64,000 bases of DNA from Pavona decussata (GCA_977016875.1 CDRNST010000302.1:310001-374000); one strand, 5' to 3'. Positions 1,554 through 48,069 are shown, counted from the stretch's first letter. Numbers and translations: made by a program. Notes: generated from the letters alone by a model not told the origin.

Positions 1554-3542
1554 ATGGCGGACCCTGCTGTACAAGTCCCGGCGCAGGAAAACCTTCCAGC
1601 AGCTCAAGCGGCCGCGGTTGTTCAACCACCACCACCGCCTCCGCCTCCACCAAACGCAGAAGAACCTCCTCAAAACGCCGCTGGAGAACAAGTCACTTTG
1701 GAGGTTTGTTCAATTTTTGTTTTACTCCAGTATCGTACACGTGTTCTTGCACTTCGTATTCCCGTGGCAGCTTTAAGTCTGTTTTCAGCTCAAGTCATGC
1801 CCTGCTTTAAACGTGTAGCTTTGTAGCTCTGCGGGCAATTTTCTCTTTACCCCCCAGTTTATTTTACGCCCTGCTTCTGAACGTGCGACCTTCGTTGCTT
1901 TGCGGGCATGTTTACAATTCATGTTGCGCCCTGGCTTGGTGGGCAATTTAAAATTCACTTCGCAATTATGTTGTGCCCTGCTGATAACGTGTACTTGGTT
2001 GCTTTGCGGGCAGTTTTAACTCTGTTTACAATTCATGTTCCGCCCTGCTTCAAACGTGTAACTTTTTAGCTTTGCGGGCCGTTTGAAACTGACTTCGTAA
2101 TTATTGTTGCGCCCTGCTTCAAACGTGTAGCTTTTTAGCTTTGCGGGCAATTTTAAATTGACTTCGTAATTATTGTTACGCCTTGCTTCAAACGTGTAGC
2201 TTTTTAGCTTTGCGGGCAATTTGAAATTGACTTCGTAATTATTGTTACGCCCTGCTTCAAACGTGTAGCTTTTTAGCTTTGCGGGCAATTTGAAATTGAC
2301 TTCGTAATTATTGTTACGCCCTGCTTCAAACGTGTAGTTTTTTAGCTTTGCGGGCAGTTTGAAGTTGACTTCGTAATTATTGTTACGCCCTGCTGACAAC
2401 ATGTAGCTTTTAGCTTTGCGGGCAATTTGAAATTGACTTCGTAATTATTGTTACGCCCTGCTGATAATGTGTTTACAATTCATGTTGCGCCCTGCTTCAA
2501 AACGAGTAGCTTTTAGCTTTGCGGGCGGCTTTAGATTGACTTTCTAATTAATTTTTTGCCCTGCTTCAACACGTATAGTTTTGTAGTTTTGCGGGCTACT
2601 TGAAGTCGACTTACTACTTTCTGAATTTTATTTATATGCGCTATTTTTGCCGATTATGTGTACATTCTAATTCTCGGTTAGCTTCAAAAGCTTTTCAATT
2701 TTGTTGACCTCAAAACATACTTCAGCAGAGAACTAGTTATTATCTTTGTGCGATCTTTGTCGATTATTCTCACTCTTCATTTTTTAATTGTCTTAATTTG
2801 CCATTTCTGAGTGCTTGTTTGCCACATTGTTCTACTTGAATTGTTTATTTTCGTATTGTTCTGTTAATTGTTATATTTGCACTCCGACTTTGTCGGAACA
2901 AAAGGTTCCCTGCCGCTTTACCGGGTCTTATCACAATGCTTGTACTCATTTACGAATGTTTTGTATCGCCGCTAAGCGGTATGAAATTACACTTCGCAAT
3001 ACATCTGTCTATTTCATTTTCTCATTCAGGCTTTGCAAGAAAGAATTAAATTTTTGGACAATGCCCAAGGGACCTCCATTCAGGCTTTAAAGAATCGCAT
3101 TACCCATTATGGTAGTCGCCGCCTGGAGGACTTCGACAAATACGAGGCCTTGCGCCTCGCGGAGGAGCTCGTCTCCGTAGCGAAGACAACTGGTGATGAT
3201 AAGGCCGCCAGCTTTGACATCATAGCGGCCACCCTAAGAGAGAAAATACACGTGCCGAAAGAGCAGTTTAAAGCTTACTTTTTGGCTCTTCTCGCGGACA
3301 AGGAATTTACAAGAATCTTTGACACAATCTCCAAGGTCGACAAGTCGTTTAGACGTCCCTCGCCTTACTCGCGTCCTCAGGCCAGAGGCAGTCAGAGGTT
3401 CTCGTCACACCCTCGAGTGACCTGCTACAGATGTGGTACGCCCGGACACAAGTCTACGCAATGTTTTAAGCGGTCTCCGACGACCCGCTATTTTTCTTCA
3501 GGCGGTCCAGGTCACAACCAGCCTCGACCGACATCTCAGTAG
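1554..3542 (+). CDS. gag: Gag-like protein, two exons (1554-1703 + 3030-3542), Pro-rich leader and CCHC zinc knuckle
   Basis: Exon 1 (MADPAV...QVTLE, 50 codons) ends at GAG|gtttgt. Acceptor tttctcattcag|GCT at 3030 is in frame with ORF 3033-3542, which has no ATG and contains CYRCGTPGHKSTQC. Confidence 0.8.
1795..2600. repeat. 69-bp minisatellite (about 6 near-perfect units plus degenerate flanking units) in the gag intron
   Basis: Unit cgccctgcttcaaacgtgtagctttttagctttgcgggcaatttgaaattgacttcgtaattattgtta; copies at 2248 and 2317 give the period. Confidence 0.9.
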
Positions 3543-3864
3543 CAGAATCTGCCCGATCCTCATTTTGTATGCGTTTTAGTACTATTAAAGTCAAATGAAC
3601 ACTATTGCATCACAATGTTTGTTTATTCGTATACATTATACCCACCCCACCAGGGTTTTATTAACATATTATTACTTACATATTTTACGACTCGCTACGC
3701 TGTTCATAGATGTGGGAACCAATTATCTCTTTTCGATCGCACCCTTCCCCCCTCGGGTGGCATTCTCAAAGGGAAGCTCACTTTCCCTCTCGGATTACCG
3801 GGGCTGAGTTTGCCATTCCTTGGGCCCTAATTTATTTCCAAGTTCTTTTTTATTTTCCTTTTAG

Positions 3865-6123
3865 CTGTCAGACCCTTGCTTTCACGATTGGGAAAAGCAT
3901 CCCGGTTTCAAGCCTAACACAGTTGGTATGAATAAGTTACAGTGGATAAGCATCGATGGTTCTGTTGTTGATGAGGCCCAAGGGATGGCAAACAATTCCC
4001 ACATCTCTGATGAGGATATCGCCCTCGTGTTGCAGGGAAATTCATTAGCGGATATGTCTCGCCTTGTTTTCCGCGATCCAGATCACTTCCTAGCAGGGGA
4101 ACTCCATCGCCATGCACCACAATGGAATGCTTTATTAAATGATATGAACGATGAGCGCTTCTCTGAAGTCCGTGATTGGATTACTAACGGTGTAGACGTA
4201 ACGAAGTTCTTTAGACCGTTTAAGGGTAGTTACAAGGGAAGGAATTACGAGTGTGGTAGTCCACCGCCTTGCGTTTTTCCCAACCACCTGTCGTGCAAAC
4301 CTTTTGCCTCGTTTATTTCTGATACGCTCCTGGACCGTTTGCGTTCCGGTGCTATTTCTTTGTGGGGCAAAGTCGGAGAATGCACCCCACCCCACCTTAT
4401 TATGCCCCTCACTGTCGAGCCTAGCAAGCCGCGTCTCTGCAACGACGATAGATTTCTTAATCTGTGGATCGAAGACCGTCCGTTTGCCTTGGATAGCGTC
4501 CAACACTTGCCTAAGTATGTCAATAAAGGATTTTACCAAACAGTGTGCGACGACAAGTCAGGATATGACCACATCAAACTTCACCCCAGCAGTCGAACTT
4601 ACTTTGGCTTCCAGTGGGGAGGTTGGTATTTTGTGTGTGAATGTATTCCTTTTGGCTGGAAATCCTCGGCCTATATATATCATACGACTGGTCTAGTTGC
4701 GTCACACAGACTTCGTTCATGGAACATTCCCTCTTCTTTGTACATTGACGACCGCCATAATGGCCAACTGTCATTTCCAGGTGGCATTTTACCAGCCGCC
4801 TATCAAGCCCTCGCCTCAAGGGATGAAGTGAATTTTGCTCTGGCCGTCGCGGGTATTTTTCTCACGTGCTACATCTTAATTTCCCTCGGCTACTTTATCG
4901 GTCTGGCGAAGTCTCACCTTACCCCGAAAAAACAGGTGCCATACCTTGGTTTCGGTATCGATTCTGAACTACAGGCGTTTACTTTGTTACCCCATAAAAA
5001 AGAAAAGCTTCTTCGTCTCATCAAAGAAACGTTGGCTCGCGATAACCTGGACCTACTAACCTTGCAAAGGCTCAGCGGTAAATGCGTGTCCATGAGCTTG
5101 GCAGTTCCGGGCGCAAGGCTTTATGTTAATGAAATAAACCTAGCTGTGTCTCGCGCCACGCGTTCTGCTCGACCTGTAAAGATGTCTGCCGCTCTAAAGA
5201 ATGAAATTGAGCACTGGCTATTCCTTGAGACCTGGGACGGTTTTCTTCCCTGGCGGTCTGAGAAACACACACATGTCAGGCTGTTCTCCGACTCATCTCG
5301 CTTCGCTTGGGGAGGTGCACTGAGTCCGGGTGCCATTGAGGCGAACGTTTATGATTACTGGGACGCCTCAACAATACAAGCCGATATCGCCACTAAGGAG
5401 ACCTTAGCGCTCAATAATGTCCTTGAATCATTCGCTGATACCATCAAAAACTCGTGGGTCGACGCCTTCGTCGACAGCATGGCTCTAGTCCGTTCATGGA
5501 ATCGACAGGGCTCTCGTTCTCAATCGCTTCCTAGCGCCTTGAAGATATTATTCAACACAATGACGAAACTCAACATCGATTTGCACCTTACTTTTGTGCC
5601 TAGTTCTCAGAACCAAGCCGACTTCCCCTCGCGACGCCTTAGCCTACAGGATGCCAAATTGTGCCCATCCCTATGGACAGTAGTACAAGAGTGGAATGGC
5701 GGCGAAAATGGGCACTCTGTCGATCTAATGGCACGCCCTTCAAACGCCCAATCCGACTTGTCAGGTGCCAAGTTACCTTTCTTCTCTGAAAACCCTCTGC
5801 CGGGATCCCTGGGAGTGAACGTGTTCGCGCAATCGCCCGATCTGTACGATCCGTTTGTATTCAAGAACCCATACGCCTTTCCCCCGATCTGCCTAATACC
5901 TCATGTTATCAGGTATATGAGAAGCCTGCAATTATCCTACACTATCGTAGTACCAGACGTATGCCCAAGGCATTTTTGGTGGCCCTTGTTAACGTCTACA
6001 TGTTCTTCCCGATACCTGCTGGCCGTTGCCGGAACCGTTGGAGCGCTCCTCACTCCCTCTAAACACGGGTTTTCAAACAATTGGCCTATCCCATGGGATC
6101 TCTGGGTGTTCCGCATCGGATAA
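3865..6123 (+). CDS. pol: Reverse transcriptase - RNase H - methyltransferase-like polyprotein (first ATG 3928; frame open from acceptor at 3865)
   Basis: RT: DDKSGYDH, IPFGW, LYIDD. RNase H: LFSDSS, KETLA, FVDS, NQADFPSR. C-terminal DIRS MT-like motifs: VDLMA...NPYAFPP. Confidence 0.92.
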   Translation: MSDPCFHDWEKHPGFKPNTVGMNKLQWISIDGSVVDEAQGMANNSHISDEDIALVLQGNSLADMSRLVFRDPDHFLAGELHRHAPQWNALLNDMNDERFSEVRDWITNGVDVTKFFRPFKGSYKGRNYECGSPPPCVFPNHLSCKPFASFISDTLLDRLRSGAISLWGKVGECTPPHLIMPLTVEPSKPRLCNDDRFLNLWIEDRPFALDSVQHLPKYVNKGFYQTVCDDKSGYDHIKLHPSSRTYFGFQWGGWYFVCECIPFGWKSSAYIYHTTGLVASHRLRSWNIPSSLYIDDRHNGQLSFPGGILPAAYQALASRDEVNFALAVAGIFLTCYILISLGYFIGLAKSHLTPKKQVPYLGFGIDSELQAFTLLPHKKEKLLRLIKETLARDNLDLLTLQRLSGKCVSMSLAVPGARLYVNEINLAVSRATRSARPVKMSAALKNEIEHWLFLETWDGFLPWRSEKHTHVRLFSDSSRFAWGGALSPGAIEANVYDYWDASTIQADIATKETLALNNVLESFADTIKNSWVDAFVDSMALVRSWNRQGSRSQSLPSALKILFNTMTKLNIDLHLTFVPSSQNQADFPSRRLSLQDAKLCPSLWTVVQEWNGGENGHSVDLMARPSNAQSDLSGAKLPFFSENPLPGSLGVNVFAQSPDLYDPFVFKNPYAFPPICLIPHVIRYMRSLQLSYTIVVPDVCPRHFWWPLLTSTCSSRYLLAVAGTVGALLTPSKHGFSNNWPIPWDLWVFRIG

Positions 6124-6367
6124 GCAAGTAGTAGCTCTTGGTTAGCGCACGAGCCAAACAAAGAACACTTAGCTATCTTTAAATTTGCCAATTCTCCCAT
6201 TAATTTAGCTCCATCCATTACTTCAGTGAAATCAATGTTGTGAATAAATCATTGTTTTCCAGTATACATCTGTTGACAGTTGTTTTATAGCTTCATTTAT
6301 ACATTTATGTCAAAACAAATCTAAAGGATAAAGAAGGAACTGTTTGTTTTACTTTCATATCCTTTAG

Positions 6368-7702
6368 GACTTACCTCCAGCCGTTCGAGCGTTTGTACCA
6401 GCCGTGTCATGTCCTTCGTGCAGCCACCCCAACGACAAGCTGTTCTTTTTCTGCCAAATGTGCGGCTACAGGAGGAAAACAGTCTCCCCAAGTGTCCCGA
6501 GCCCTAAACTCTCAGTCGACCTTCAAGCGATAGATAACCGTTTGGAACTCCTAAATAATGCCTCTCTTCAATCGTCATACTCAAAACAGAAGTGCTCACT
6601 TCGTACGGAGTTTGAAACTTTCTTGGCGTCCCTTCCGAATAGTAAAACCATCCTTTCGGCAAGCCCCACTGACATCTCTCGGTTCTTGGTCTGGAAAGAC
6701 CGACATGGCAAAACCATAGTACATAGTAATGGGTGTCCCGATTCCCACCTTCAAAACGCAGCTAAGTGTAAATGTCCTAAACGCCTGGCATTCAAGACAA
6801 TCGACTCCTACATTGGAAAACTGCGAGCCATTTTTAAGGAAACCGGGCGCTGTGGAGAGTGGAACTCCCTGCTAGGTCTGGGTAACCCCGCCGCTTCACT
6901 CGAGGTGCAAAAATATCTTAAGGCGTCAACTGAGGAACAATTACGAGCCCGCATCACGCCAAAGCAAGCAGTTCCCCTATTTTTGTCCAAATTGTTGCTT
7001 CTGGCCCGTTTTTTAAATCGGAAAATTGCGGAGCGCTCGGTTAGTCCTTCTGGTCTGTTTGTATTGACGCGGGACCAAGCGTTTTTCAAAACGTTATTCT
7101 TTAGCGGTGATCGTGGTTCAGATCTTGGCATGGTGAAAACAGAAGAGATCCTGCGTTTCCCCCAGGACAATGGGCTGTTGTTCAACCACGTATGGGGAAA
7201 AACCCTGAGGGATGGCGTCTCTAACGTCTTCGGGATTCGGAGACACCCTAACCCTGAGTTGTGTCCAGTTAAAGCTATTGAGACATATGTAGCCGTGGCT
7301 TCCGAGTTACGCGTTTCTGTGACAAATGGTTACTTGTTTCGACCAACTAATCCCCAAGGTCATATTGTGAACAAACCATTTTCAAGTTCTTCAGCAGAAG
7401 CTCGTTTAAAGCTGTATTTGAAAGAAGCTAAGATCGATGAGGGAGAAACGCTACACAGCTTCCGTTCGGGCTCAGCCATAACGTTAGCGTTATCTGGCTC
7501 CCAGTTGGCGGACATAATGTCTCATGTAGGATGGAATAACAAAGAAACTGCTCTCTACTACATGAAACTAGCGGAGGTGCTTCGTTTGGATAGTCCCTCT
7601 CATTTGCTATCCGCGGACTCTTCCGCGACAGCCGCCCTAACAGAGAACTACATGGAGCTTAACCGTCTAAAAAACTTTATATCCGCTTTTCCGCACGTTT
7701 AA
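6368..7702 (+). CDS. Tyrosine recombinase with N-terminal Zn-finger-like motifs (no ATG at the 5' end; frame opens at a splice acceptor)
   Basis: Catalytic set R (GDRGSDL), K (GKTLRDG), HxxR (LHSFRSG), H (SHVGW), Y (ALYYM); CPSC...CQMC and HxxxC...CKCP at the N-terminus. Confidence 0.92.
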   Translation, partial: DLPPAVRAFVPAVSCPSCSHPNDKLFFFCQMCGYRRKTVSPSVPSPKLSVDLQAIDNRLELLNNASLQSSYSKQKCSLRTEFETFLASLPNSKTILSASPTDISRFLVWKDRHGKTIVHSNGCPDSHLQNAAKCKCPKRLAFKTIDSYIGKLRAIFKETGRCGEWNSLLGLGNPAASLEVQKYLKASTEEQLRARITPKQAVPLFLSKLLLLARFLNRKIAERSVSPSGLFVLTRDQAFFKTLFFSGDRGSDLGMVKTEEILRFPQDNGLLFNHVWGKTLRDGVSNVFGIRRHPNPELCPVKAIETYVAVASELRVSVTNGYLFRPTNPQGHIVNKPFSSSSAEARLKLYLKEAKIDEGETLHSFRSGSAITLALSGSQLADIMSHVGWNNKETALYYMKLAEVLRLDSPSHLLSADSSATAALTENYMELNRLKNFISAFPHV

Positions 7703-10164: not shown

Positions 10165-13100
10165 CTAAATTAGTATTTTCAATGTTTTATTGACCTTGCT
10201 AACATCAGAAAGGTAATCAGCACCAGAACGATCGATACTGTTCAGAATCATAACCAAATTAGTCAGGGAGGAGTTTACTGTGAGGGCCTGGGAAAGGGAT
10301 TTTGCACCGGTATTACCAATACTGTTCCTACTCAAATCCAAATTAGTCAGGGAGGAATTAACTGTAAGGGCCTGGGAAAGGAATTCAGCACCGGTATCAC
10401 CAATACTGTTGTGAAGTAAATTCAAATTAGTCAGGGAGAAGTTTACTGCGAGGGCCTGGGAAAGGGATTCTGCACCAGTATCACCAATACTGTTGTGACT
10501 CAAATTCAAATTAGTCAGGGAGGAGTTTACTGCGAGGGCCTGGGAAAGGGATTCTGCGCCGGTATCACCAATACTGTTGAAACTCAAATCCAAAATAGTC
10601 AGGAAGTAATTTACTGTGAGGGCCCGGGAAAGGAATTCAGCACCGATATCACCAAAACTGTTCCTACTCAAATTCAAATTAGTCAGGGAAGAGTTTACTG
10701 TGAGGGCCTGAGAAAGGAATTCAGCACCGATATCACCAAAACTGTTCCCAATCAAATACAAATTAGTCAGGGAGGAGTTTACTGTGAGGGCCTGGGAACC
10801 GGTTTCGCCAATACTGTTGTAACTCAAAACCAATTTAGTCAGGGAGGAGTTTACTGTGAGGGCCTGGGAAAGGGATGCAGCACCGGTTTCGCCAATACTG
10901 TTGTAACTCAAATTCAAATTAATCAGGGAGGAATTTACTGTGAGGGCCTGGGAAAGGAATGCAGCACCGGTATCACCAATACTGTTCCTACTCAAATCCA
11001 AATTAATCAGGGAGGAATTTACTGTGAGGGCCCGGGAAAGGAATTCAGCACCGGTATCACCAATACTGTTCCTACTCAAATCCAAATTAGTCAGGGAGGA
11101 GTTTACTGTGAGGGCCTGGGAAAGGGGTGCAGCACCGGTTTCGCCAATACTGTTGTCACTCAAAACCAAATTAGTCAGGGAGGAGTTTACTGTGAGGGCC
11201 TGGGAAAGGGATGCAGCACCGGTTTCGCCAATACTGTTCCAAATCAAAACTAAATTAATCAGGGATAAATTTACTGTGAGGGCCTGGGAAAGGAATGCAG
11301 CACCGGTATCACCAATACTGTTGTCACTCAAATTCAAATTAATCAGGGAGGAATTTACTGTGAGGGCCCGGGAAAGGAATTCAGCACCGATATCACCAAA
11401 ACTGTTCCTACACAAATCCAAATTAGTCAGGGAAGAGTTTACTTTGAGGGCCTGAGAAAGGAATTCAGCACCGGTGTCACCAATACTGTTCCCAATCAAA
11501 TACAAATCAGTCAGGGAGGAGTTTACTGTGAGGGCCTGGGAAAGGAATTCAGCACCGGTATCATCAATACTGTTCCAACTCAAATCCAAATTAGTCAGGG
11601 AGGAGTTTACTGTGAGGGCCTGGGAAAGAGATGCAGCACCGGTTTCACCAATATCGTTCATACTCAAAACCAAATTATTTAGGGAGGAGTTTACTGTGAG
11701 GGCAAGAGAAAGGGATGCAGCACCGGTATCACCAATACTGTTCCTACTGGAATCCAAATGCGTTAGGGAGGAGTTTGCTCCCACAACTTCATACAATAGC
11801 TCTTTTAGTTCGAAATGTTCCGTTACTAAATTTTTGATGCTAAGGTTCCTACCTAATGAATCAACCAAACGGGACTTGAGGCTTTCTTGATAGTTTGCGC
11901 ACTGTGATATATAGTATAAGGCGAATTGCAGATATGACCTAACCTTACCAGATTCAAAACAAAACAAATTAACTGATGAAGCTACCCTACTTACAAAACA
12001 AACGGCTTTTTCTTCACACTGGGAGGCTGTAATTCCAGTCATGAACAGGAACACTTCTTTTAGTTCATCCAAATATTGTTGATCAGTCACTAAGTAATGA
12101 ATATCTTCGTCGTTAATCTCAAACGCGAGATAAAAGCTGGAAAAGAACTCCTGAAAGCTCTTGTGAAAAAAACCACAACGAAAGGAAGGTTTCCTCCTAC
12201 TAGTACCTGCCTGGATTGACAAAAATCCAAACTTGATCAAAAGACTGAAAATGGCGTCACCAGATTCGTTTTCTTCGAAATCTGATTCCCCTTTACGAAG
12301 AGCTTGAAAGGCCATACGTCCCAGATATATAAGTTCTTTTTTGTAAACTGATATAAGATCTTCGTTGTTGCTTGACAATCCGTTCTTTCTTTCGTATCTT
12401 CTCAAAACAAACAGGACAATTTCAATGTATAATTGAGTTCGATTCTCGGGAAGTATGCCATTGAAATCTTCAAAAAGAATACAGAGTAAAGCTGTATTGA
12501 GAGGGTTTACTGTCAGTTGCTTTAAGTCATTTGTCCGAGGATGATTTCGAACACGAACAGGTTCAAATGGCGAAGGCCAAAGCTCCTTAAGAAGCTTTTC
12601 TGCCAACTGTTTCTTGCCTATTTTCCGGAAGTACTTTAGAATGAAACTTCGTGCATCCCTTTCGGCAAACCCGACAATCTCCAACAGTCTGTCACAGTAT
12701 CGCCTTACCTTCTTTCCAGCTTCATGACGAGATGTAAGAACAATGTGACAATTTGCAAACTCTTTACTTTTAAGAAGGTTTTCAATCATTTCTAGTTTAC
12801 TGGCATCCATTTCATCTACTCCGTCGAGTACTAACAGAACGTTAAGCTGATTTTCGCTGATAAATTGAAAGAAAGCCTCTTTAGCCTCTTTGTTTACATC
12901 GCCAGGGAGAATTTGATCATCAATAGCTTCCTTGATGCTAGATGATTTGATATCACGGCATCTTAAAAGCAACAGCACATCAGTCTCGGGGAAAGACTCG
13001 TCCCATTCATCTTGTTTAGTTGCCCAGTCATAAGCCAGCTTTTGACAGTAGGTCGTCTTTCCCATGCCAGGATCGCCCTCGATCAGCACAGTCCGTGGCG

Positions 13101-16100
13101 TTTGGCAATCTTCGTGAGCTTTGAAGATAGCTGTCATGTTGGTGATTTCATCAGTCAATTTTCCTTGTGTCTTTTCTTTGCCAACGATCTTTAGCCTTGT
13201 GAAAATGTCGTTCAGATGAAAGCTTAAGTCTTCACACCAGGGAACTGGCAAAAGCCTTTCTTCACAGGTTTTGTTAAGCTGACGGATACTCTTTATAATA
13301 TAACTTGGATATGACGCATCTAAGGAAATAAAGCATACAAGAATTAAGTTTTAATGCACAGGAGGTTATGTCATATATATTTAATGTCCCTGCCAATTGT
13401 TGGTCACCAAGAATCCCTGTTCTTCCTATGGCGACTATAGTAGCGAGTATCTGCAACCCTGTATGTTGCTGTACTCAGAATTATTTATAAAGTTAAAGTC
13501 GGTAAAAATTTGACCACTTGAAGGTATGGGTTGTGGAAAAACTCCAAGTCATTAGGGGAATGTACATGTGTTGTGATCCGTATCAGTCGTAGCTGATACA
13601 GTCTAGACACAATCTAACGTGCCCACTTTCTTTGCCTCTATAGCATTGGCGACTGCCATAAAAGTCTACAACTAATGAACTACAGGTAAGACAAGAAGGT
13701 GTGTCAAATCATACCTTCATAGTGTGGCCACGTACGGAAAACACAAGAATCACTCAGAATGTGCGTTACAACAGAAGCTGCCATCACACTAGCAAAAGGA
13801 CTCCAACTCTCTGTTGTTGACTCGGCACCATCTGCATAATCAGCTATTGCTTTGACAATGAGCCACTCAATCTGATCATCAAATGCTGCCATAAAAACGC
13901 CTGCAATACAAAATTAATTTTTACAATGCAGATAAGTGGAAAACTTCATAAGAAGAAAGATCAGTTACTTTAATGAATTCCGTATGCCGATTGATACGGC
14001 CTTGGCAACGTGGAAAATGATGAGAGAAACACTGGATGTAACGCAGACATGATTACTGGTACTCGCAGCAACATAACTGATCTAATAAACAGGTTGAACA
14101 GCCTGTGCAAGTTTGGACACAACGACATGAAAGGACAGCGTTCCTCTCATGACTATCCATGACTTTTAAAAATGGATCTATAACCAGGTGGATTCATCAT
14201 GGTTTCTGTGATTAAAAATATGTAGAAACGGATACAAAATCAAATGTTCTAAAAACGCAACGTTTTCGCCAAAACTTCAGCCTTTATCAGAGGAATGCGA
14301 AAAGAATTTACAAATCTCGCGAAGATGGAAAAGAGAAAATGTAATTTTTTTGAAATAATTAAGTTTTATCCTCTAACGTTAGATTTAAATATTCATGTAG
14401 CAGGTGCATGCCATCGTCTCGATTGTTTGGATTCTTGCAGATAGTAATTTGCCATGCCTCTAAAAGGCATCTGTTGCGCCAATTTGCACTTTTGCGTAGG
14501 ATCTTTAAAGATTCCAAAGAGATGGAGTGACCTAAACGTAGACAATGTTTAGCTAATGCAGACTTGGGGATCTTTCAAGATTCTAAAAAAAAAAAGCTTT
14601 GGCCAGTTTTTAAGACAGGAGAAGATTGGCGTTAGATTTAAATATTCATGTAGCAAGTGCATGCCATCGTCTCGATTGATTGGATTCTTGCAGATATTAA
14701 TTTTCCATGCCTCTAAAAGGCATCTGTTGCGCCAATTTGCATTTTTGCGTAGGATCTTGAAAGATGCCCAAGAGATGGAGTGACCTAAACGTAGACAATG
14801 TTTAGCTAATGCAGACTTTAGGATCTTTCAAGATTCTAAAAAAAAGCTTTGGCCAGTTTTTAAGACAGGAGAAGATTAGTGATTTGTGACAGGAAAAGTA
14901 ATATTTGTAAGTAATACGAAGGTTAAAGACGAAATTGGCCTTGGGTTATATGATATATGGACTTTCAAAAAACCATAGACAGCTTCTGGGGATAAAATAC
15001 AACCGTTTTCTAATAGATCAATCATGAGAAAGAGTTTTCCATCCGATTTCCAAACACCGAGAACTGGGCTGAAAAAAAGAGGTGCAGCCGGGTTTTTTAA
15101 ATCAACTTCGAGGTGTTTGAAAATCAGATGAAACATTCTTCAGAGTGTTTTATTAAGCTTCTCAAACCTTTAATATATCGTGGAGCAATTCAAGGAAAAA
15201 TGCACCAAATTTTATGATAATTTAGATCACTTTTTCAAACCTCCTTTACGGTAGTTATTTCCCTTTTTTTCCTTTTTCTCTTAATGAATTATTAATGAGT
15301 TTAAGAATTGGTGTTATTTTATATTCACGGCTCGACTCGTTTTAGTTACCTCATGCTAGAAAATAAGGCACCGAGGCTAAAAACGCACCTTCTCCTTCCC
15401 TTTCAATAGCAATTGCTTGAGGATGGGACTCAGCAACTTCCTTACGACGCGATTCAGCGCTGACCAGTTCTGGACCACTCAAAAACTCTCCATCACAATA
15501 GACATTGGGTTCGTGAGGTTGGGGATTTTTCAGAGGAGCCTTGAAACCATCAGCTGAATGCTTGATGACGTAAAGAAACCGTCTACTCACATAGCTTCGC
15601 ATACCAGATGAAAGTTCTTTTAATTTTGCAGAAACAACAACGTCGCCGAGCTTGGCTTTCTCGGGGTTGAGACTACTGCAGGTTCCCACTGAAATGACGG
15701 CCTTTGGTCGAAGCACAGGTACTGCATTCTTCATAGTAATCAAAGCACCACTAGGACCACTAGATCCCTCATTCGATCGTATTAATGCTACTTTCACTTT
15801 GTCTCTGTCCCCTGTGTTCTCAAAATACACGTAGCCAATGTTGTCATACCAACATCTAAAGGGATTGATCAGCTGCCTGTAACAAGCCAAGAACTCACAA
15901 TCTTTAACTGTCAGCAAGAGAAAATCAACAGGAAGAGGAGCCTCATCTGGTCTCTTTGTTGTTGTTTCAACATCTTGCATGGATGGCAGGCGTTCATTCA
16001 ATTGAGGTGGGTCAACTTCAAGGTGAGCTGTATTTGCCCTGTCACAATCGCTGCTTGCAGCTCTTGACTCGTCATCGCTGCTCGCAGCTCTTGACTCACC

Positions 16101-18735
16101 ATCGCTGCTTCCAGCTCTTGACTCACCATCGCTGCTTCCAGCTCTTGACGTCCTTCTGAGCGAGATGTTACCAAACAAACCGCTGCAAAAGATTATAACA
16201 CATTTCGTTAACGTAAAAGAACACAATTAACGTAGTGGCCATTTTTAGTTAATAAGTGGCAATAAGTGGCAATTGAACGTTCGAATAGCAGGCTGGGTAA
16301 CATAAGTCCCATGGCACGGGTGCTCAGCGGCCAGTTGTCGATAGACAAACAGATTTATTTCCGGGGTCCCCTCGTGTCCTTTTTGTCAAGACCGTCAAGG
16401 GACCATTGTTTCCATCGACCAATCAAAATTACTAAAGGACATGTTTTCTAAATTTAAAGGGCGCTCCATTCAACCTAAATTTCTGTGGTGCCAGTAAAAC
16501 NNNNNNNNNNNNNNNNNNNNNNNNNNNNNNNNNNNNNNNNNNNNNNNNNNNNNNNNNNNNNNNNNNNNNNNNNNNNNNNNNNNNNNNNNNNNNNNNNNNN
16601 NNNNNNNNNNNNNNNNNNNNNNNNNNNNNNNNNNNNNNNNNNNNNNNNNNNNNNNNNNNNNNNNNNNNNNNNNNNNNNNNNNNNNNNNNNNNNNNNNNNN
16701 NNNNNNNNNNNNNNNNNNNNNNNNNNNNNNNNNGGGTAAAGCAAGGATTAAAGCCAATATAAAAAAAAAGTTAAGTCTCTAAAGCTTACTAGCTTAGGAT
16801 AGGTCATCGGTGACAACACTCGATGCAGTTCCGTATTCTAGCGGACATTGGCTCCGTGAATTGACTACCTTTTATTCTTCCAAGAAACGAAATGAGGCAA
16901 AAAATACAAGGTACGAGACAATATATTTCCTTGAACTAACAAATTCGTGAACTAGAATGTGCATGAGCTTACTATGAACAATTCCGCCGCCTTCCATGAT
17001 CGTGTCGTTTGTTGCAGTCAATCCATGTCACGCGTGACTATTATTTTCGAGAATGAAATAAACATGCGTTCGAATAAAGCTCGGCATTCGAATGGAATGT
17101 AGAACATTTCTCTGGAAATCTTTCCGAAAAAGACGCATTAACTGAGAAAAAAAGATTCAAAATACTTGAGAAACAATTGTTATTCTTGAAATACTTGTGC
17201 TGTAATATAAAGAAAAATTAATAGTTTTATACCGTCAGTAAACTAGGGAAATTTCTACGAGAACTCTGAAATCTCTTTGCCGACATCAAACCTGACATGT
17301 AAATAGGCCTTGGCAAACAGGCTTGAAATGGAAATCCGATGTCAAATAATTTTCATAAATTTAAAACATTGCTGCTGAAAAATTCATGAATTGGAAACTT
17401 TTGGCATTAGGAAAAGGATTTCAAGAAAAAAAAATTGGAGGGATGTAACTGTGCCAGAAAGCGTCCAGTCGTGTTTTGAACTTTCCATACATTATCCTGT
17501 GTTTTTTTCCCGCGAACTATTTTTAGTAGCAGTTCACGGCTGGTTCGCTTTACAGACAAATGTATGGAAAGTTCATAGTAAGTTCATACACATTCTAGTT
17601 CAAAAATTTGTTAGTTCAAGGAAATATATTGTCTCGTACTTTGTATTTTTGCCTCATTTCGTTTCTTAGAAGAATAAAAGGTAGTCAATTCACGGAACCA
17701 ATGTCCGCCAGAATACGGAACTGCATCGAGTGTTGTCACCGATGACCTATCCTAAGCTAGTATTAAGCTTTAGAGACTTAACTTTTTTATATTGGCTTTA
17801 ATCCTTATTTGACTAGCAAATGACCTGTGATGTTGAAAAAAGAAAAAGAAAAAAAAAAAAAAGGAAAAAAAAATAAAATAAAAAAATAAAAAAAATGACC
17901 CCAACCCCGACCCCGCGTTTTACTGACACCCAAATTTCTGGTACAGAATCAAATAAATGGACAACCTGGTGTTCTTTTTCCCGGAAATCTGGAAATTCCG
18001 GGAATTTTGATTTTCTACCATTTTACACAAATCCGTTGTATTCCCATAAATGTCCTTTTAATTCACCGGTTCTCCTATAAAAAGCTGTAGACGTTCTCGG
18101 AAATTGTGTGTGCTCCTGGAAATCCACTTTACAAAACATTACAGGTTTGAATGAGAATTTTACCGTGCTTCATGTTAAATTGGTCGAATTGTCATATTTC
18201 AAATAGCTTTAGCAAAATTTCCGAAAAACTAGCTCGATTTAATCAGGTTTAATTTGGTCAAGAGATGGTGCTTTAGTGACTCGCAGTTTGCTTGCATCGG
18301 TCGCCTCACTCGAGGAGAAAATTGGACGAATTTGCTTTTCAGGCGTGAACACAGGTCTGTCTGAATTAATTATATTTAAGTAAGAAAGCTTAATGTCTGA
18401 TTATCTGTGTGTCTTGATCCACTGACTTTCTTCACCACGAGATCTTATGTCAACCGTGTCTATTTATTACTTTCTCCAGTGCGTACGTGTAAACAAACCG
18501 AAATCCTCCGGCGCATACCAAATTCGCCCATATGACAACACGATCAAATTACGCTACACAATTTTGGCATTGGCAAGAGCTGTTCATTTAAACATCTGCA
18601 TTTAATACAACATTGCTTTTTTGCTACAATATTCTACAAAATAAAGCAGTAGCCACATGCAGTCATAAACAGCCTTTTATGTAAACTTGTTTCTACGTAC
18701 CTCACAAAGCTCCTGAAACGTGAAAATCGATTCAT
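10165..18735 (-). CDS. NLR-like immune receptor A: PNP_UDP/ATP-nucleosidase-like - NACHT - 19 LRR; exons 18735-18701, 16182-15389, 13900-13715, 13319-10165 (~1389 aa)
   Basis: GT-AG junctions with consistent phases (2,1,1; 4170 nt total). PNP motifs: VISVGTC, LGDVVVS, AIEREGEG|VFMAA, WLIVKAIADYADG. NACHT: Walker A GDPGMGKT, Walker B LLVLDGVDE, VLTSR, NPL, FFHKSFQEFF. 28-aa LRRs. The first coding exon lies across an assembly gap and is less certain. Confidence 0.85.
10170..11770 (-). repeat. 84-bp coding tandem repeat (19 RI-like LRR units, one with a 4-aa deletion)
   Basis: LTNLxLSxNSIGDTGAxxLSQALTVNSS repeated, with high DNA identity between units. Confidence 0.95.
14377..14877. repeat. ~250-bp tandem duplication in an NLR A intron
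   Basis: cgttagatttaaatattcatgtagca... at 14377 and 14630, near identical. Confidence 0.85.
16501..16733. other. Assembly gap
   Basis: N run. Confidence 1.
16743..17806. mobile_element. Non-autonomous DNA transposon / foldback element with ~240-bp TIRs
   Basis: 16743-16979 is the reverse complement of 17571-17806; the left end abuts the gap. Confidence 0.8.
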
Positions 18736-32473: not shown

Positions 32474-35400
32474 ATGGCGGGAAAAGGTTTTTGCAGTGGG
32501 TGTCTAAGAGGCGGGAATTTTTTTTTTTTTTTTTGGAGAAAACACAAATTTTCTTTCGGGTAAAACTTGAAAATGTTTCGCAACAAATGCGCTAAATGCA
32601 CAAGGACAAGGTCAAAATCAAGGTTTATCGGATGGGAAGGTGCTTTTTTGTGCAGAAAATGCTACAACAAAGTGAAGAGAGAGTCGGTGAAGGTGGTCGA
32701 GGACGCAGTAGCTGCCCATGGAGCCCTCGCATCTGAAACAGGTATTTGAGAAAAACGTCGACATTCTGTTCAATTCTTTTGTTTTTATTCAAAGAGAGAT
32801 ATGTTAAATTTAAGTCAAATTCCAATTTTATGTTTGTAAATTACAGAAACGTTACCAGAGGCCGAGTTGCTGTCACCAGCGTCTACATGTACAGCTGACA
32901 GAGAGTTTCTTCGAGTTACCGGTACGGTTTTGAAAGGGTTTTTTTTATCATTGAAATAAACTTATTATAAACAGTGAAAAAAGCTTAAATTTTATTGCAA
33001 TTTATAATTGTTTTGAACGATGATAATTTTGTGGTGATATTATTCTAGCTATGCGTTATAGCTAAGCATAAGCTTACAACTTCCCATGACTTTAAAAACA
33101 CTACAAAAATAAAATTGAAAAAAAAAACAGACTAACAAACTGGTGGTCCTCAGGACTAAATGATCTAAAAACTTTGAAAAAGGGTTTTTAAAACCAAACA
33201 AGTAAAATTTGTTGTCATTTATGTGGTTAGACTACTAGTTCAAGGCATTCAAGGTAATTATAATGATAATTATAATAATAATTTTAGGTGTTTTTTTTGT
33301 TAATTTTTCTGTAGTCATTGCATCTTGACTGCAAGTAAAACATATTGTTTAGAGAATACTAACATGAAAATTAAAACATTTGTAAGTCACACTACTTGAT
33401 TTGGTTCCTTTTTTCTGTACTTTTAGGCCAAAAATTCACACAAGAAATCAGGTCTTTACAAGGAGCCCTGCAGGACCACTGTGGAAAAAACAAGAATCCC
33501 CCGATTTACGAGCCTGATGAATTTTTCCAGTTTTGTTTACTCGCCGGGGCAGCTAATGTTTTCAATTTTATTTTCAACTGCATGACCTCTTCTCGCCATA
33601 CTGGGGATAGAAATCTTTTAAATCGTAAACGCACAGTAGTTATTTTGTATCAGTTATGTTTTGGTTATTCTCAAAAGTGTAATTTTTTTCAAGAGGACAA
33701 TGGTTTATTTCTTTCATTTTGTAATTTGTCTCAATGTGGAATTGAAACGCAACGACAAGAAGTTTACAATTTTGCATCAGGAGACCACAAGATCAGGGGA
33801 CCAGCAAAGTGGATCACATGTGTACTATCATCATCAAAATTGTAAAAGAAGTCCTGCCATTCCTTTTAGTTCTGTTAATTTAGTTCATAACCCTTATGGC
33901 ATTGATATTGATCTTCTTGTAAATAAGTTATGTTCAGTTCAGTTTTTTAGTCAAGTGTGTACTTTTTCATTTGCCTCTTCAATGCCAGAATTTACCTCTG
34001 TTGCCTTTGATCCAGTCATGGGTAGACACCAAATGGAACCCCATGACTATCAAGGTGCTAGTTCTTGTTCTTTACGATCTTTTAAGGATGTTTATTTAAT
34101 TGATTTTGTGAAGTTAGATTTAAAAAGTAAGCAAAATTATGAGGATGCTTTTAATATAGTTTTAGACACTAACATGAGGGAATATCTCTCTAAGTTTATT
34201 GTTTTAATGCCAGCTGACTGGCCTGGCCAATTTTTTCCAAGGCAAATAGTTTACCAGAAAGCCAGTCAAGCAACAACTGCAAGCAATTTTCCCCCAGGTT
34301 CCTGCCGTCACCCACTCAGCTCAGTCATTCCCACCTTAGGTCCCTTGCATGTGGACCTTAATGCTGATGAGGATATTGTTGTTGGCTACATGCCATTTAT
34401 GCGTCTTGTGTATGAATCTGTTTTCCCTGGCAGGAAACTGGCTGACAAGCCAAAACCTTGGCGCATACAGTTTGTGTTGGAGTTGGTTTATGGGGGATGG
34501 ACACTAATCAGAACTGTTGTTAAATCTGTTTTTTCACAGGTCAAAGATGTCCAGTATGGCATTTTAATTAATCTGTTAGACAATTACATTCCTTTGACAC
34601 TTTGTAGCTATAGTATTCTGTTTAAGCTGAACTGTCTTGATGATTATTACTTTTCAGTTTTTAGACTTTGGATCATGTTTTTCTGCTTTCACAGGAAGAA
34701 TTATAACAAGGCACCATTGTTTTGGCTCAGTAACATTCTTTTCTGGCAAACTAATGGATGCAGAGATGTTTACAATTTCTTTTCAGGTTCTCTCAGTGTC
34801 ATTGATGAGTATTTTGTTGAGTTTGTTCACAGCCTTGCAAGGAAATCAACAAATCCATCAGACAGTGTTGATCAACTCCAACAGAAATTGTTTTCCATTT
34901 TTGCATCAGGGGATAGGCAAGCAAACTTCCGTGCTGCCTTTACCCCTTCCAAGAATTATATTTTTAGCCGGCGTCAACTTGTTAATTTATTTTCCAGGGT
35001 TGCAAGCACCATTGTTACCATTTTAAGTTCAATTGCAAATTCACCAGGAGCAGCCCATCCCCTGCCACGGGCACCAGGGCAAAGGAGGAATCTTTCATTG
35101 TGGTGTGCACCAGCTTTGTTTGGAGATGCTTCCATCAAGAGTGACTACCTTCCCCTTGGCTTTCAATTCCAGCCATGTCCAGATCAGGGAAGAAGATGCG
35201 ACAAGTCAGGCTGCACCATTTCTACCAACACCCCATGGAAGGTTTTTGAAGGGTGTTGGCATTCTTTTCATTTATGTTGTTTAACTGTTGTTGATGTTTG
35301 TCCCATTTGTAGAGAAGGAATTGTAACAGCATTGACATCCTTAGCTAATACAGCTAACCAATCTGTTCGTCAACAGCAGGATGCCACTGCAACTGATGGT

Positions 35401-36444
35401 CCCAGTGAAGGGATTGACAACTCGACAGGGTCAGGTGGCGATGATGATGAGCCTCTGACGAGTACAGTGGATGGAAATGTTGATGAAGTTGTTCAGAACT
35501 TGACACGCCAGGTAATGTCTCTTTCTGTTGCATCACCACCTGCGCAGCCTTTGGCCCCATCCAGGGCCAATGTGCCATCAACACCATCATGTCCATCGCC
35601 TCAGAGAAGGCCTCCCCACTGCAGTACCTGTGGTCATCTCAAGCAAGGCCATCAGAGACCAGTGTCACAGCGAGCAGTTGGTAAGTGCCCCGTTTGCCCT
35701 TCTCAGTCGTGCACCAGACATGGGCGTATTTTGCCTTGTCAATGTGCTTGGTGTTCAAGACAGTCACAAATAGGCATTAATCCACCCATCTCTTCTCTTC
35801 CACAGGGACCAGTTGTCAGGGAAACACAGATAAATCCAGATGTGACCGAGTGGCTGATTTCTTTTTCACAATCAACTGTAACCCCTGGGCAAATGGGTAG
35901 CAACGCATGTACCATCATTTCTGTGTATGGGGCTGTCAATTTTCTTATGCCTTCAACAAACTGGAGTCTGCCTTCTCCTCACAGTTTGCCTTTGGAATTT
36001 GTCAGCATGTTTAAACAACTTATGATTTATGGCAACCATTCCTACAATGGGATTGGTAACCCGCAAGCCACTTACAGTGCACCTGAAATTATTAATCATC
36101 CTCAACTTGGTTTTTCAGGGGTTGTGAAATGTGGGGATGAATATCAATTCAACAATTTTACTTCTTTTGCAGGTGAACTTCAACATCTTGCTGCAAGACC
36201 TCAACATTCAAAGCTTGCAGCAGTGATAATCTTACCACCTGATAAAACGATGCTCTTGCTTGTAGGTAGATGTGGTGAGTCGGTACTCATGGAAAGTCAC
36301 ATGCACGGTAATGTTGGTGCAATTATTGCTTCTGCAGGTCCTCACAAATTACATGAGATGGCTCTGTACATTGAATTCATGGCAAGAAGAGACTGGGCCT
36401 ATAATTCCACCCCATTTGACATGACTATTGTTGAGTTGTGCTGA
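32474..36444 (+). pseudogene. Damaged spliced gene for an Academ/DUF6589-like transposase fused to RING, Zn-knuckle and papain-like peptidase modules (exons ~32474-32741, 32847-32921, 33427-36444)
   Basis: Phase-1 GT-AG introns. Core motifs PADWPGQ, LGPLHVDLN, FHRKNYNK, DEYFVE. C-terminal CDKSGC..GCWHSFHLCC..CPIC, CSTCGH..H, GSNACT..ESHMH. T-run disruption at ~32520 and frame switches at ~33760-33855. Confidence 0.55.
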
Positions 36445-45884: not shown

Positions 45885-46017
45885 ATGGCGAGCTGTTGCA
45901 GAAGGTGTACATTTTGCATTAGAAGATTTTGGAAGGGAAAATGTTAGTCTTAGGGATAAACAAATGCAGATACTAAGGAATGTTAATGTGGAGAAGAAAG
46001 ATGTCGTAGCCGTGCTG

Positions 46018-46048
<31 letters not shown>

Positions 46049-46380
46049 AAATCATGCCACCCTTCGCAGATTTCATGGATTCTGGCTTCAGACCGACAGA
46101 AACTAACTCAATTGTATTAGTTATATTACCTCTTAATGCGCTTATAAGGGACCAGGTGACTAAGGTGAGAGAGTGCGGTTTGAAAGCGTGTATTCTTAAA
46201 GCCGATCGCGTGGCTTTAGATGGAGAGGACGACGATGGAGAACAAGTTAGTTTATCTGAGCCACTGCAAAACCTGAAGAACTTTCAATTGATCTTTGCTC
46301 ACCCGGAAGCCCTAGTTGATGAGAACAAAGCAATTATGAAGCTCCTGAAATGGACAGAACTTCAAAGGCGTATGTATGCT

Positions 46381-46412
<32 letters not shown>

Positions 46413-48069
46413 CTGGTATGCATGTGAATTTTATTATCAGACTTCATATTGCTTTCTTAATTATACTTACCGTAATCAAACTACACCTTAGTCATACTGT
46501 TTCCTTACAAGGAGTACGGAATGATTTATATGTAAATTTTATATTCGTATTCTAATTATTCAAGGGCACACTTTAATTGAAGTCTCACTCTGCCGTGTGT
46601 CCCTCGCCATTGTATTTTCTTGGTCGGTGAAAGCTCAAACAAAAAAAATAGATAAACAAATAAATACATCTCTTTTGACCATTGTTTTGTGATATTCTGT
46701 CTTTTCAGTTTCAGTCTGCAAAATGACTTTAATGCAGACGAATGGTGATTTATTTGCAGTAAAAACCATACCTGGGACACAGGCAGCTGCTAACATTTTA
46801 AACTACCATCTGGCCAAGACATTTTTTTTTAAATTAAATTAAATTAAATTAAATGTGTCTAAAATGATTTCAATGGAAATAAAGTTTGACATGCCTGAAG
46901 CTTTCATTCAAGTTGCAGGGGCCTCATGTCATATAATTTGCAATGACCTTCCAATTAATAAATTCTGGAAAGTCCAATGATGTTGACAAAACGTGCATTA
47001 CAGTTATACTATAGCTTTAATTCTTACCGGGTAATATTGAGGAATTTTTTTCCAATGTTGTATTTCTTGTTATGGAAAGCTTGTCACACTGGGAAGCATC
47101 TTCCCAAGAGTACCTTGGCTTTGGCTTACAGCCACTGCAACGGAAAAGGCCAGAACAGAGATTATTGACTACCTGGGCATGTTCAACCCAGTTTTAATTG
47201 TTGCCTACCCAGACAGACCAAACATCTAAATTTTTCGTCATCACCCAGACCAGACAGAGAAGATGATAAATTTAATACAATCTTGAGTCCTCTCGTGGAA
47301 GCATTAAAGAAAGAAAGAATGCAATTTCCACTTACTGTGATTTTTGGCAATTTGGAAACTATTTCGTCATGTTATGCATTTTTTAGCTATGTATGGGAAA
47401 AGAGCAATATGAGCCCATTGGTACCCCACCCAAGCAGAAAACAGGTTGTTTACATATGTTCATGCACAGAACTCTCTTAGAGAAAAAGAAAGAATTATTT
47501 ATGGCCTCACCTTTGGAACTACTAAACTCAGAGTTATATTTGCCACTGTGGCCTTCGGTGTAGGATTGGATGTGAAGGATATCAGACAGATTATTCACAT
47601 AGGTGTACCATGTTCAATGGAGGAGTACTTCCGGGAGGCAGGAAGGGCTGGGAGAGATGGCCTTCCATCAAAGGCACACGTGTTTTATAATTCCTATGAC
47701 ATTTTAAAAGTCAGAAAAAATATGTCCCCAGTGATGCAAAAATATGTACAATCTGATAAGTGTAAAAGAGAGGTGATCATGGGATACTTTGGACTTACAC
47801 CGCTGCCGTGTAATTCAGATCAACTAGTACATAGCTGTTGTGACTATCATGAAAAGCTCTGCAAATGTGAGGACTGCTTACTTTACACTGTTGCATCTAT
47901 GATGGACCCTCCATCGACGGACGAAATTACCCAAACACGTGAAAAGGAAATCCAACCTCGCTCCAGCCTGACTTCTGAACAAAAATCCAAACTCAGTTGT
48001 GAAGAACTTGCAAAGTTCAGGCTGTCACTACCTGGTCATGGCTGTCTCGTTCACTTTTGCAGCGCTTAA
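45885..48069 (+). pseudogene. RecQ-family (SF2) helicase pseudogene carried by the AcademH-like element
   Basis: VLPTGFGKSL (I), ILPLNAL (Ia), VVDEAH (II), LTAT (III, ~47125), FATVAFGVGLDV (V), EAGRAGRDG (VI), CKR..CCD.H Zn region; stop at ~47228 and frameshifts. Confidence 0.8.

Follow-up and report, generated by a model that had tools for sequence, protein, structure and literature searches.

A stretch of 64,000 nucleotides from the stony coral Pavona decussata (GCA_977016875.1, CDRNST010000302.1:310001-374000; hereafter the window) carries two paralogous genes of the nucleotide-binding, leucine-rich repeat (NLR) type, gene A (10165-18735) and gene B (52094-57597), both on the minus strand. 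In each of them, a large open reading frame (ORF; 10165-13251 and 52094-55042, minus strand) encodes a NACHT domain together with leucine-rich repeats (LRRs) of the ribonuclease-inhibitor type, and two smaller ORFs lie upstream whose products align along one nucleosidase domain. A first-pass annotation of the window had proposed that splicing joins a head of the PNP_UDP fold to NACHT and LRRs in both paralogues. For gene A, this is borne out by transcript joints and by the reading frame, and for gene B it is supported by splice sites and frame; the interval 13715-16182, to which the head of gene A had been assigned, agrees to the base with minus-strand exon boundaries, as judged by the splice sites.

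Exon structure and transcripts of genes A and B

The two genes follow a common exon plan, in which a short 5' exon precedes two PNP exons, the second of them small, and a single NACHT-LRR exon comes last. All introns are of the GT-AG type, all exons are open, and the reading frame is kept over both coding junctions in both paralogues. The individual parts are as follows.

Gene A, 18701-18735, minus strand: 3' end of the 5' exon, with a GT donor directly after 18701
Gene A, 5' exon to PNP exon, minus strand: 5' intron of 2518 bases, containing a run of N at about 16485-16740
Gene A, 15389-16182, minus strand: first PNP exon, with an acceptor AG before 16182 and a donor GT after 15389
Gene A, 13901-15388, minus strand: intron inside the PNP domain, 1488 bases, GT-AG, phase 1
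Gene A, 13715-13900, minus strand: second PNP exon, defined by splice sites and by transcript joints on both sides, aligning to the family consensus
Gene A, 13320-13714, minus strand: intron between PNP and NACHT, 395 bases, GT-AG, phase 1
Gene A, 10165-13319, minus strand: NACHT-LRR exon (Pfam NACHT 89.5 bits, LRR_6 191 bits), ending at the stop codon
Gene B, 57597-57625, minus strand: 3' end of the non-coding 5' exon, homologous to the 5' exon of gene A, with a GT donor after 57597
Gene B, 56678-57370, minus strand: first PNP exon, defined by splice sites, with the start ATG at 57359-57357 (Pfam PNP_UDP_1 21.8 bits)
Gene B, 55707-55892, minus strand: second PNP exon, carrying the motif KGIADYAD
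Gene B, 52094-54999, minus strand: NACHT-LRR exon (Pfam NACHT 86.5 bits, LRR_6 217 bits)

The nucleosidase-fold domain comprises about 250 residues and is interrupted by one intron. In gene A, the first PNP exon spans the domain from strand beta-1 to the E-x-E motif (ExE) discussed below, or about four fifths of PNP_UDP, and the second contributes the helix that follows ExE, the last strand, on which the motif KAIADYAD lies, and the helix at the C-terminal end of the fold. Both NACHT domains score well above the Pfam cut-off of 26.7 bits and contain the Walker A and Walker B sequences GDPGMGKTT and LLVLDGVDE (13077-13051 and 12837-12811 in gene A). LRR_6 stretches, 14 in gene A and 16 in gene B, reside in the same open exon as NACHT, and about 19 repeats of the ribonuclease-inhibitor type can be recognized in gene A. 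Read from the ATG at 57359, the coding sequence of gene B extends in frame over 3774 nucleotides, corresponding to 1257 amino acids.

Transcript contigs from four runs, each from a different study, were mapped to positions 12300-16450, that is, to gene A only. A joint omitting exactly 1488 bases (13899/13900 to 15388/15389), with the plus-strand ends CT..AC, is present in X1 and X7, and a joint omitting exactly 395 bases (13319 to 13715) is present in X1 and in three X5 contigs. These joints, which come from contigs of three studies, equal both predicted introns of gene A. Contig depth covers the exons and drops to near zero wherever the two introns are unique in sequence; transcripts with the exon structure of gene A exist. 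In addition, a loose contig end at 16181 runs on, with few mismatches, into the sequence of the 5' exon (about 18701-18730), which points to a further 5' exon in gene A. For gene B, the joining of head and NACHT is predicted from the conserved splice sites and the frame.

Several further features of the locus stand apart from the exon structure. Within the PNP domain of gene A, the 1488-base intron carries a dispersed repeat and a tandem duplication of 253 bp (14377-14877), the two copies of which are 94% alike. Very high contig depth was observed in the RNA run X13 at 14941-15357 and 16192-16450 (up to about 13,000 and 19,000, respectively), with many loose ends; these intronic stretches are probably dispersed repeats transcribed elsewhere, and an Rfam scan of them matched no family. 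The leader of gene A contains a 27-bp sequence repeated four times in tandem (16042-16149) and coding for AGSSDGESR-like units. Transposon genes (3033-7702, 33661-36444 and 45964-48069), comprising a DIRS-like reverse transcriptase with tyrosine recombinase, a large ORF with RING/Zn-knuckle features, and RecQ-like helicase fragments, flank and separate the two NLR genes.

Fold and active site of the head

The fold of the head was assessed through annotated relatives of the window proteins. A word search with the NACHT-LRR exon yielded P0090, a protein of Porites harrisoni in which PNP, NACHT and LRRs form one chain of 1307 amino acids, and the full head of P0090 passes the gathering cut-off of Pfam PNP_UDP_1 (PF01048, 25.1 bits) with 39.7 bits over profile positions 40-215. 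When compared with the Protein Data Bank (PDB) by phmmer, the first PNP exon of the window aligns with 5'-methylthioadenosine/S-adenosylhomocysteine (MTA/SAH) nucleosidase (MTAN) of E. coli, placing PQAIAIERE on PQAIAVEME. A second relative, P0243, has a head 58% identical to that of the window and an AlphaFold model of good confidence (pLDDT about 85-94 over the head). Residues 42-295 of this model superpose on whole MTAN chains with Z scores of 26-27 and root-mean-square deviations of 2.3-2.8 Å over 221-230 of about 230 residues, and Foldseek returns the same match with an E value of 5e-14 and a target TM-score of 0.73-0.80; the remainder of the model, containing the NACHT part, matches NLRC4 and NOD2 (Z 27-31). 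The AlphaFold model of the first window exon by itself is poor (pLDDT 57) because the last strand and helix are absent, and the fact that its top 25 structure matches are all MTAN lends weak support. The second PNP exon alone matched nothing in Pfam, PADLOC or the PDB, since it is too short. By the modelled relative, the window head has the PNP_UDP fold of MTA/SAH nucleosidases, and the first-pass assignment of the fold thus stands.

A second search with the P0090 head produced 118 annotated proteins from Porites, Oculina, Acropora, Montipora, Pocillopora and Stylophora, nearly all of which have NACHT and most of which have LRRs. Residue columns were counted over 115 of the annotated coral heads, and fractions of 115 below refer to this set. 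An apparent deletion of 11 residues after VVSAKL in the window heads, relative to P0090, was dismissed as a defect, given that only 29/115 relatives have the insert. The residues of the window heads that correspond to the active site of MTAN are the following.

Gene A, 15891-15902, minus strand: DCEF on strand beta-1, in which Glu is the equivalent of the general base E12 of MTAN
Gene A, 15396-15404, minus strand: E-R-E (GAA AGG GAA), aligned with E172-M173-E174 of E. coli MTAN
Gene A, 13830-13853, minus strand: KAIADYAD, in which the first Asp (13841-13839) is the equivalent of the catalytic D197 of MTAN
Gene B, 56693-56685, minus strand: ERE, the same motif as in gene A
Gene B, 55845-55822, minus strand: KGIADYAD, from the sequence

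These assignments are consistent among the comparisons. Between the P0243 model and the MTAN structure 1nc1, the offset is 59 for both M232/M173 and D256/D197. For the Glu on beta-1, the column holds E in 113/115 coral homologues, and the offset agrees with the structural alignment. Both window genes, as stated in the first-pass annotation, contain AIEREGEG and an intact K(A/G)IADYAD, and they keep the equivalents of E12, E172, E174 and D197 of MTAN. The canonical E-M-E of MTAN is found in neither copy; the equivalent of M173 is Arg, encoded by AGG, one base from ATG. Retention of the Asp in genes A and B is informative because this column is D in only 52/115 of the coral relatives. It is at this position, that of MTAN D197, that the window heads have the catalytic Asp expected of the Cap17-like clade, where it would correspond to D472 of Cap17 and D353 of DtcC. 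The MTAN Met that Arg replaces lies beside the ribose 5' substituent of the substrate, and a basic side chain in the middle of ExE could help to hold phosphates or alter the substrate.

Genes A and B share the Arg with a group of close relatives. The first PNP exon has at least 139 matches in the genome assembly searched, that of a stony coral (602 Mb, 1180 contigs), and nearly all of them are open. The eight closest (contigs C302 and C319; 84-100% identity), which include both window copies, all have ERE, with AGG as the Arg codon wherever checked, and IADYAD was present in five of five of these R-type copies that were checked. The three paralogues beyond A and B that were checked keep the Glu residues of ExE, the Glu on beta-1 and the Asp residues of IADYAD. 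Among the first exons of the R-type, the ratio of nonsynonymous to synonymous divergence (dN/dS) is 0.14-0.31 (about 0.23), at a dS of 0.13-0.25, and the head is therefore under purifying selection. Other arrays in this genome have EME, ESE, ELE or ETE and mostly retain the Asp; in some arrays, ISNYAD, VASFGD, VARYGD or IAGYGD is found. Judged by their sequences, the R-type copies are a young local subfamily and a lineage-specific variant. A distant paralogue (L043; G000:C486:2823400-2827720), 51% identical, also has E-R-E, with ARYGD for IADYAD, and Arg in ExE may have had more than one origin within this genome.

Variation of the head across corals

The first-pass annotation had regarded E-M-E as the usual form of the motif. 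In this family, the Met is not fixed. Of the 115 coral heads, 49 have T in the middle of ExE, 39 have M, 7 have I, 6 have L, 4 have K and 3 have N, whereas none has R; copies from this genome have M, R, S, L or T. Across corals, no site of the ExEGEG block varies more than this one, which is flanked by a first Glu conserved in 105/115 and a second conserved in 95/115 heads. Among exon-type products of other assemblies, E-N-E is the commonest form. The catalytic Asp column is likewise divided, with D in 52, S in 23, H in 18, R in 16, and a few N and G. The two positions are associated in the annotated heads: a kept Asp goes with E-[M/L/N]-E, and a lost Asp goes with E-T-E. In the Asp-keeping heads, the middle of ExE is Met in 37/52.

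Arrays without the Asp were also observed in this genome (L013-L020, L036, L037, L041-L043, L046, L049 and L057). From their sequences, the Asp-less heads look like conserved pseudo-enzymes; in the literature, we found no paper mentioning the loss of Asp in coral PNP heads. The same NACHT-LRR core or PNP head also occurs in corals together with other partners, namely glycosyltransferase GT1/GT4, OTU, HEPN_DZIP3, caspase, Death domain and TPR (P0036, P0054, P0055, P0259, P0261 and P0267), a pattern that indicates that effector heads are freely shuffled among coral proteins.

Possible functions of the R-type heads

The architecture itself, put forward as a discovery by the first-pass annotation, had already been reported. 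According to Dyrka et al. (2014; PMC4986451), who cite Hamada et al. (2013), PNP_UDP is an N-terminal NLR domain in Acropora digitifera, and it also occurs with a Death domain in a sponge. Hundreds of NLR PNP domains from fungi and corals have been placed in the Cap17-like clade of ATP nucleosidases (Rousset, 2023; bioRxiv 10.1101/2023.01.24.525353). The PNP-NACHT-LRR architecture has thus been known in corals since 2013, and it is the R-type subfamily that sets the present genes apart. Cap17 and DtcC are ATP and dATP nucleosidases, the defence function of which is lost upon mutation of one predicted catalytic Asp of the PNP domain (D472A in Cap17, D353A in DtcC), and two eukaryotic relatives, the sponge DDAN and the fungal NLRN, show toxicity in E. 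coli and, in vitro, cleave ATP more readily than dATP; it was proposed that such NLRs cleave ATP upon pathogen sensing (Rousset, 2023; 10.1101/2023.01.24.525353). The background given by the first-pass annotation on Cap17, Detocs, and fungal and coral NLRs agrees with this account.

Genes A and B resemble the PNP_UDP-NACHT-LRR receptors of corals such as Acropora digitifera in the order of PNP_UDP head, NACHT, and LRRs of the ribonuclease-inhibitor type. Compared with annotated proteins of Oculina, Porites, Pocillopora, Stylophora, Montipora and Acropora, they show 58-66% identity in the head and 45-62% in NACHT-LRR; their E-R-E sets A and B, which stem from an unannotated genome, apart from all 115 compared annotated coral proteins. 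Cap17 and DtcC share with them a PNP_UDP-fold effector mounted on an immune sensor or signalling module and a functionally essential Asp, but their trigger is a cyclic nucleotide (SLOG domain) or phosphotransfer; in A and B, activation would come from NACHT oligomerisation. DDAN (Amphimedon queenslandica; Death domain and PNP) and NLRN (Hyaloscypha variabilis; PNP-NACHT/NB-TPR) are eukaryotic proteins of immune type, each with a Cap17-like PNP domain; the partner of the head is a Death domain in DDAN, and NLRN has the same plan of a head on an NLR, but with TPR rather than LRR. MTAN (PDB 1nc1 and 5dk6) is the closest solved fold to the coral head, yet it is a free-standing housekeeping dimer acting on nucleosides, has 15-20% identity, carries M173 in place of Arg, and shows no NLR fusion. 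Plant TIR-NLRs and bacterial Avs with PNP heads follow a similar logic, in which a sensor-driven oligomer activates a metabolite-destroying head; they differ from A and B in the cleavage of NAD+ by TIR and in the use of NB-ARC (plants) or STAND NTPases (Avs). Judged by profile searches, the sequence resemblance to the bacterial enzymes is too weak for the clade to be assigned. Against PADLOC, P0090 gave weak matches to PDC-M60C (37.5 bits) and to a CBASS 'PN-superfamily' effector (32.1 bits) in the stretch from ExE to the Asp. The profile of that effector, PDLC00759, was rejected as a test of the clade: it matches 7/14 control genomes and alone cannot separate immune from housekeeping PNP domains. 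A search for bacterial relatives gave 39 pattern matches, none of which was confirmed.

We consider it probable that A and B are tandem members of a large stony-coral family of PNP_UDP-NACHT-LRR receptors, the head of which acts as an ATP/dATP nucleosidase. By analogy with the bacterial, sponge and fungal relatives, binding of a ligand by the LRRs would release the autoinhibition of NACHT and allow oligomerisation, which would bring the PNP heads together and switch on hydrolysis. Enzymes of the PNP fold work as oligomers. The heads would then cleave ATP and dATP at their N-glycosidic bond; the resulting depletion of energy and nucleotides would arrest or kill the infected cell, again as in the relatives. 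Within this scheme, the change from Met to Arg in ExE (ATG to AGG) most likely tunes the binding of the 5' substituent and would not abolish catalysis.

Several observations weigh against this interpretation. Scored singly, the first PNP exons remain under the PF01048 cut-off, with 19.7 bits for gene A and 21.8 bits for gene B. For three of the four runs, the assignment to RNA is a guess, in favour of which the intron-free pattern argues, and the transcript contigs are mostly 90-99% alike, so some of them come from paralogues. Gene A has ACG (16151-16149) where gene B has its start ATG; translation of gene A therefore, on the reading of its sequence, must start elsewhere, at the ATG of the 5' exon (18735-18733), which is in frame with the PNP exon, or at Met 15980. 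Finally, the catalytic Asp is replaced by S, H, R, N or G in 63/115 annotated heads, and the coral family, by these columns, clearly tolerates non-catalytic heads.

The ACG, together with one X13 contig that reads from exon 2 into the intron, could be taken as signs that the join is only apparent, with the PNP exons and the NACHT-LRR exon forming genes of their own or being the remains of a decayed one. Given the exact GT-AG joints in contigs of three studies, the near-zero depth of the introns in their unique parts, open exons with the frame kept over both junctions in both paralogues, and 118 annotated homologues in one chain, we regard this as hardly credible. More weight, though still well short of an even chance, goes to a pseudo-enzyme head in which Arg blocks the pocket, leaving the domain to act only as a module for oligomerisation or adaptor contacts, or as an integrated decoy for a pathogen factor targeting host nucleosidases. 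The loss of Asp in more than half of the annotated heads, which are nevertheless kept in full-length NLRs, would suit such a role, as would the ARYGD of the second, unrelated ERE copy in this genome and the lack of Arg in the middle of ExE among the annotated proteins. In A and B, however, the catalytic Asp and the second Asp are present, as are the two ExE Glu residues and the Glu on beta-1, and the three further R-type copies are alike where checked; Asp retention tracks E-[MLN]-E and loss tracks E-T-E, with the window copies on the Asp side; and the dN/dS of about 0.23 signifies constraint, though it does not tell catalysis and scaffolding apart.

It is also conceivable, if rather improbable, that the heads are active N-glycosidases or phosphorylases with another substrate, such as AMP, ADP, NAD-derived or signalling nucleotides, with the middle of ExE setting the choice and subfamilies differing in it. 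Any of M, T, N, L, S, R, K and I can occupy this position, whereas the Glu residues on either side of it vary little and are nearly invariant in the Asp-retaining heads, and the Met of MTAN sits beside the ribose 5' substituent, both of which would fit. The middle residue is, however, mostly Met in the annotated heads that retain the Asp, and the sponge and fungal relatives that were tested all preferred ATP. The first-pass annotation had read E-R-E as a hint of altered substrate specificity or of a sensor-only role. Of these, the sensor-only or dead role has become less likely because the R-type copies keep the Asp and three Glu at a dN/dS of 0.14-0.31, and altered specificity remains a possible, weakly supported reading. 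As far as the residues allow a prediction, the R-type head is more likely a live nucleosidase, possibly with shifted specificity, than a dead one.

More speculatively, and in our view doubtful at present, coral PNP-headed NLRs might split into two classes. In the first, the Asp is kept and the residue in the middle of ExE (M, L, N, S or R) would set the nucleotide, E-R-E being a new specificity; in the second and larger one, E-T-E heads in which S, R, H or N has replaced the Asp would be pseudo-enzymes that regulate or serve as bait. If true, this split would portray an animal NLR family that diversifies its effector chemistry besides its sensor. Coral PNP heads intended for assays should have their Asp position checked first, because over half of the annotated heads lack the catalytic residue. 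The sole new detail of the window heads is the lineage-specific Arg in their ExE motif. Beyond it, the enzyme-headed type of coral NLR is real and expressed in this genome, where it can be given exact exon limits and is present in well over a hundred copies. This supports the view that depletion of ATP and other nucleotides is an old immune strategy common to bacteria and early animals.

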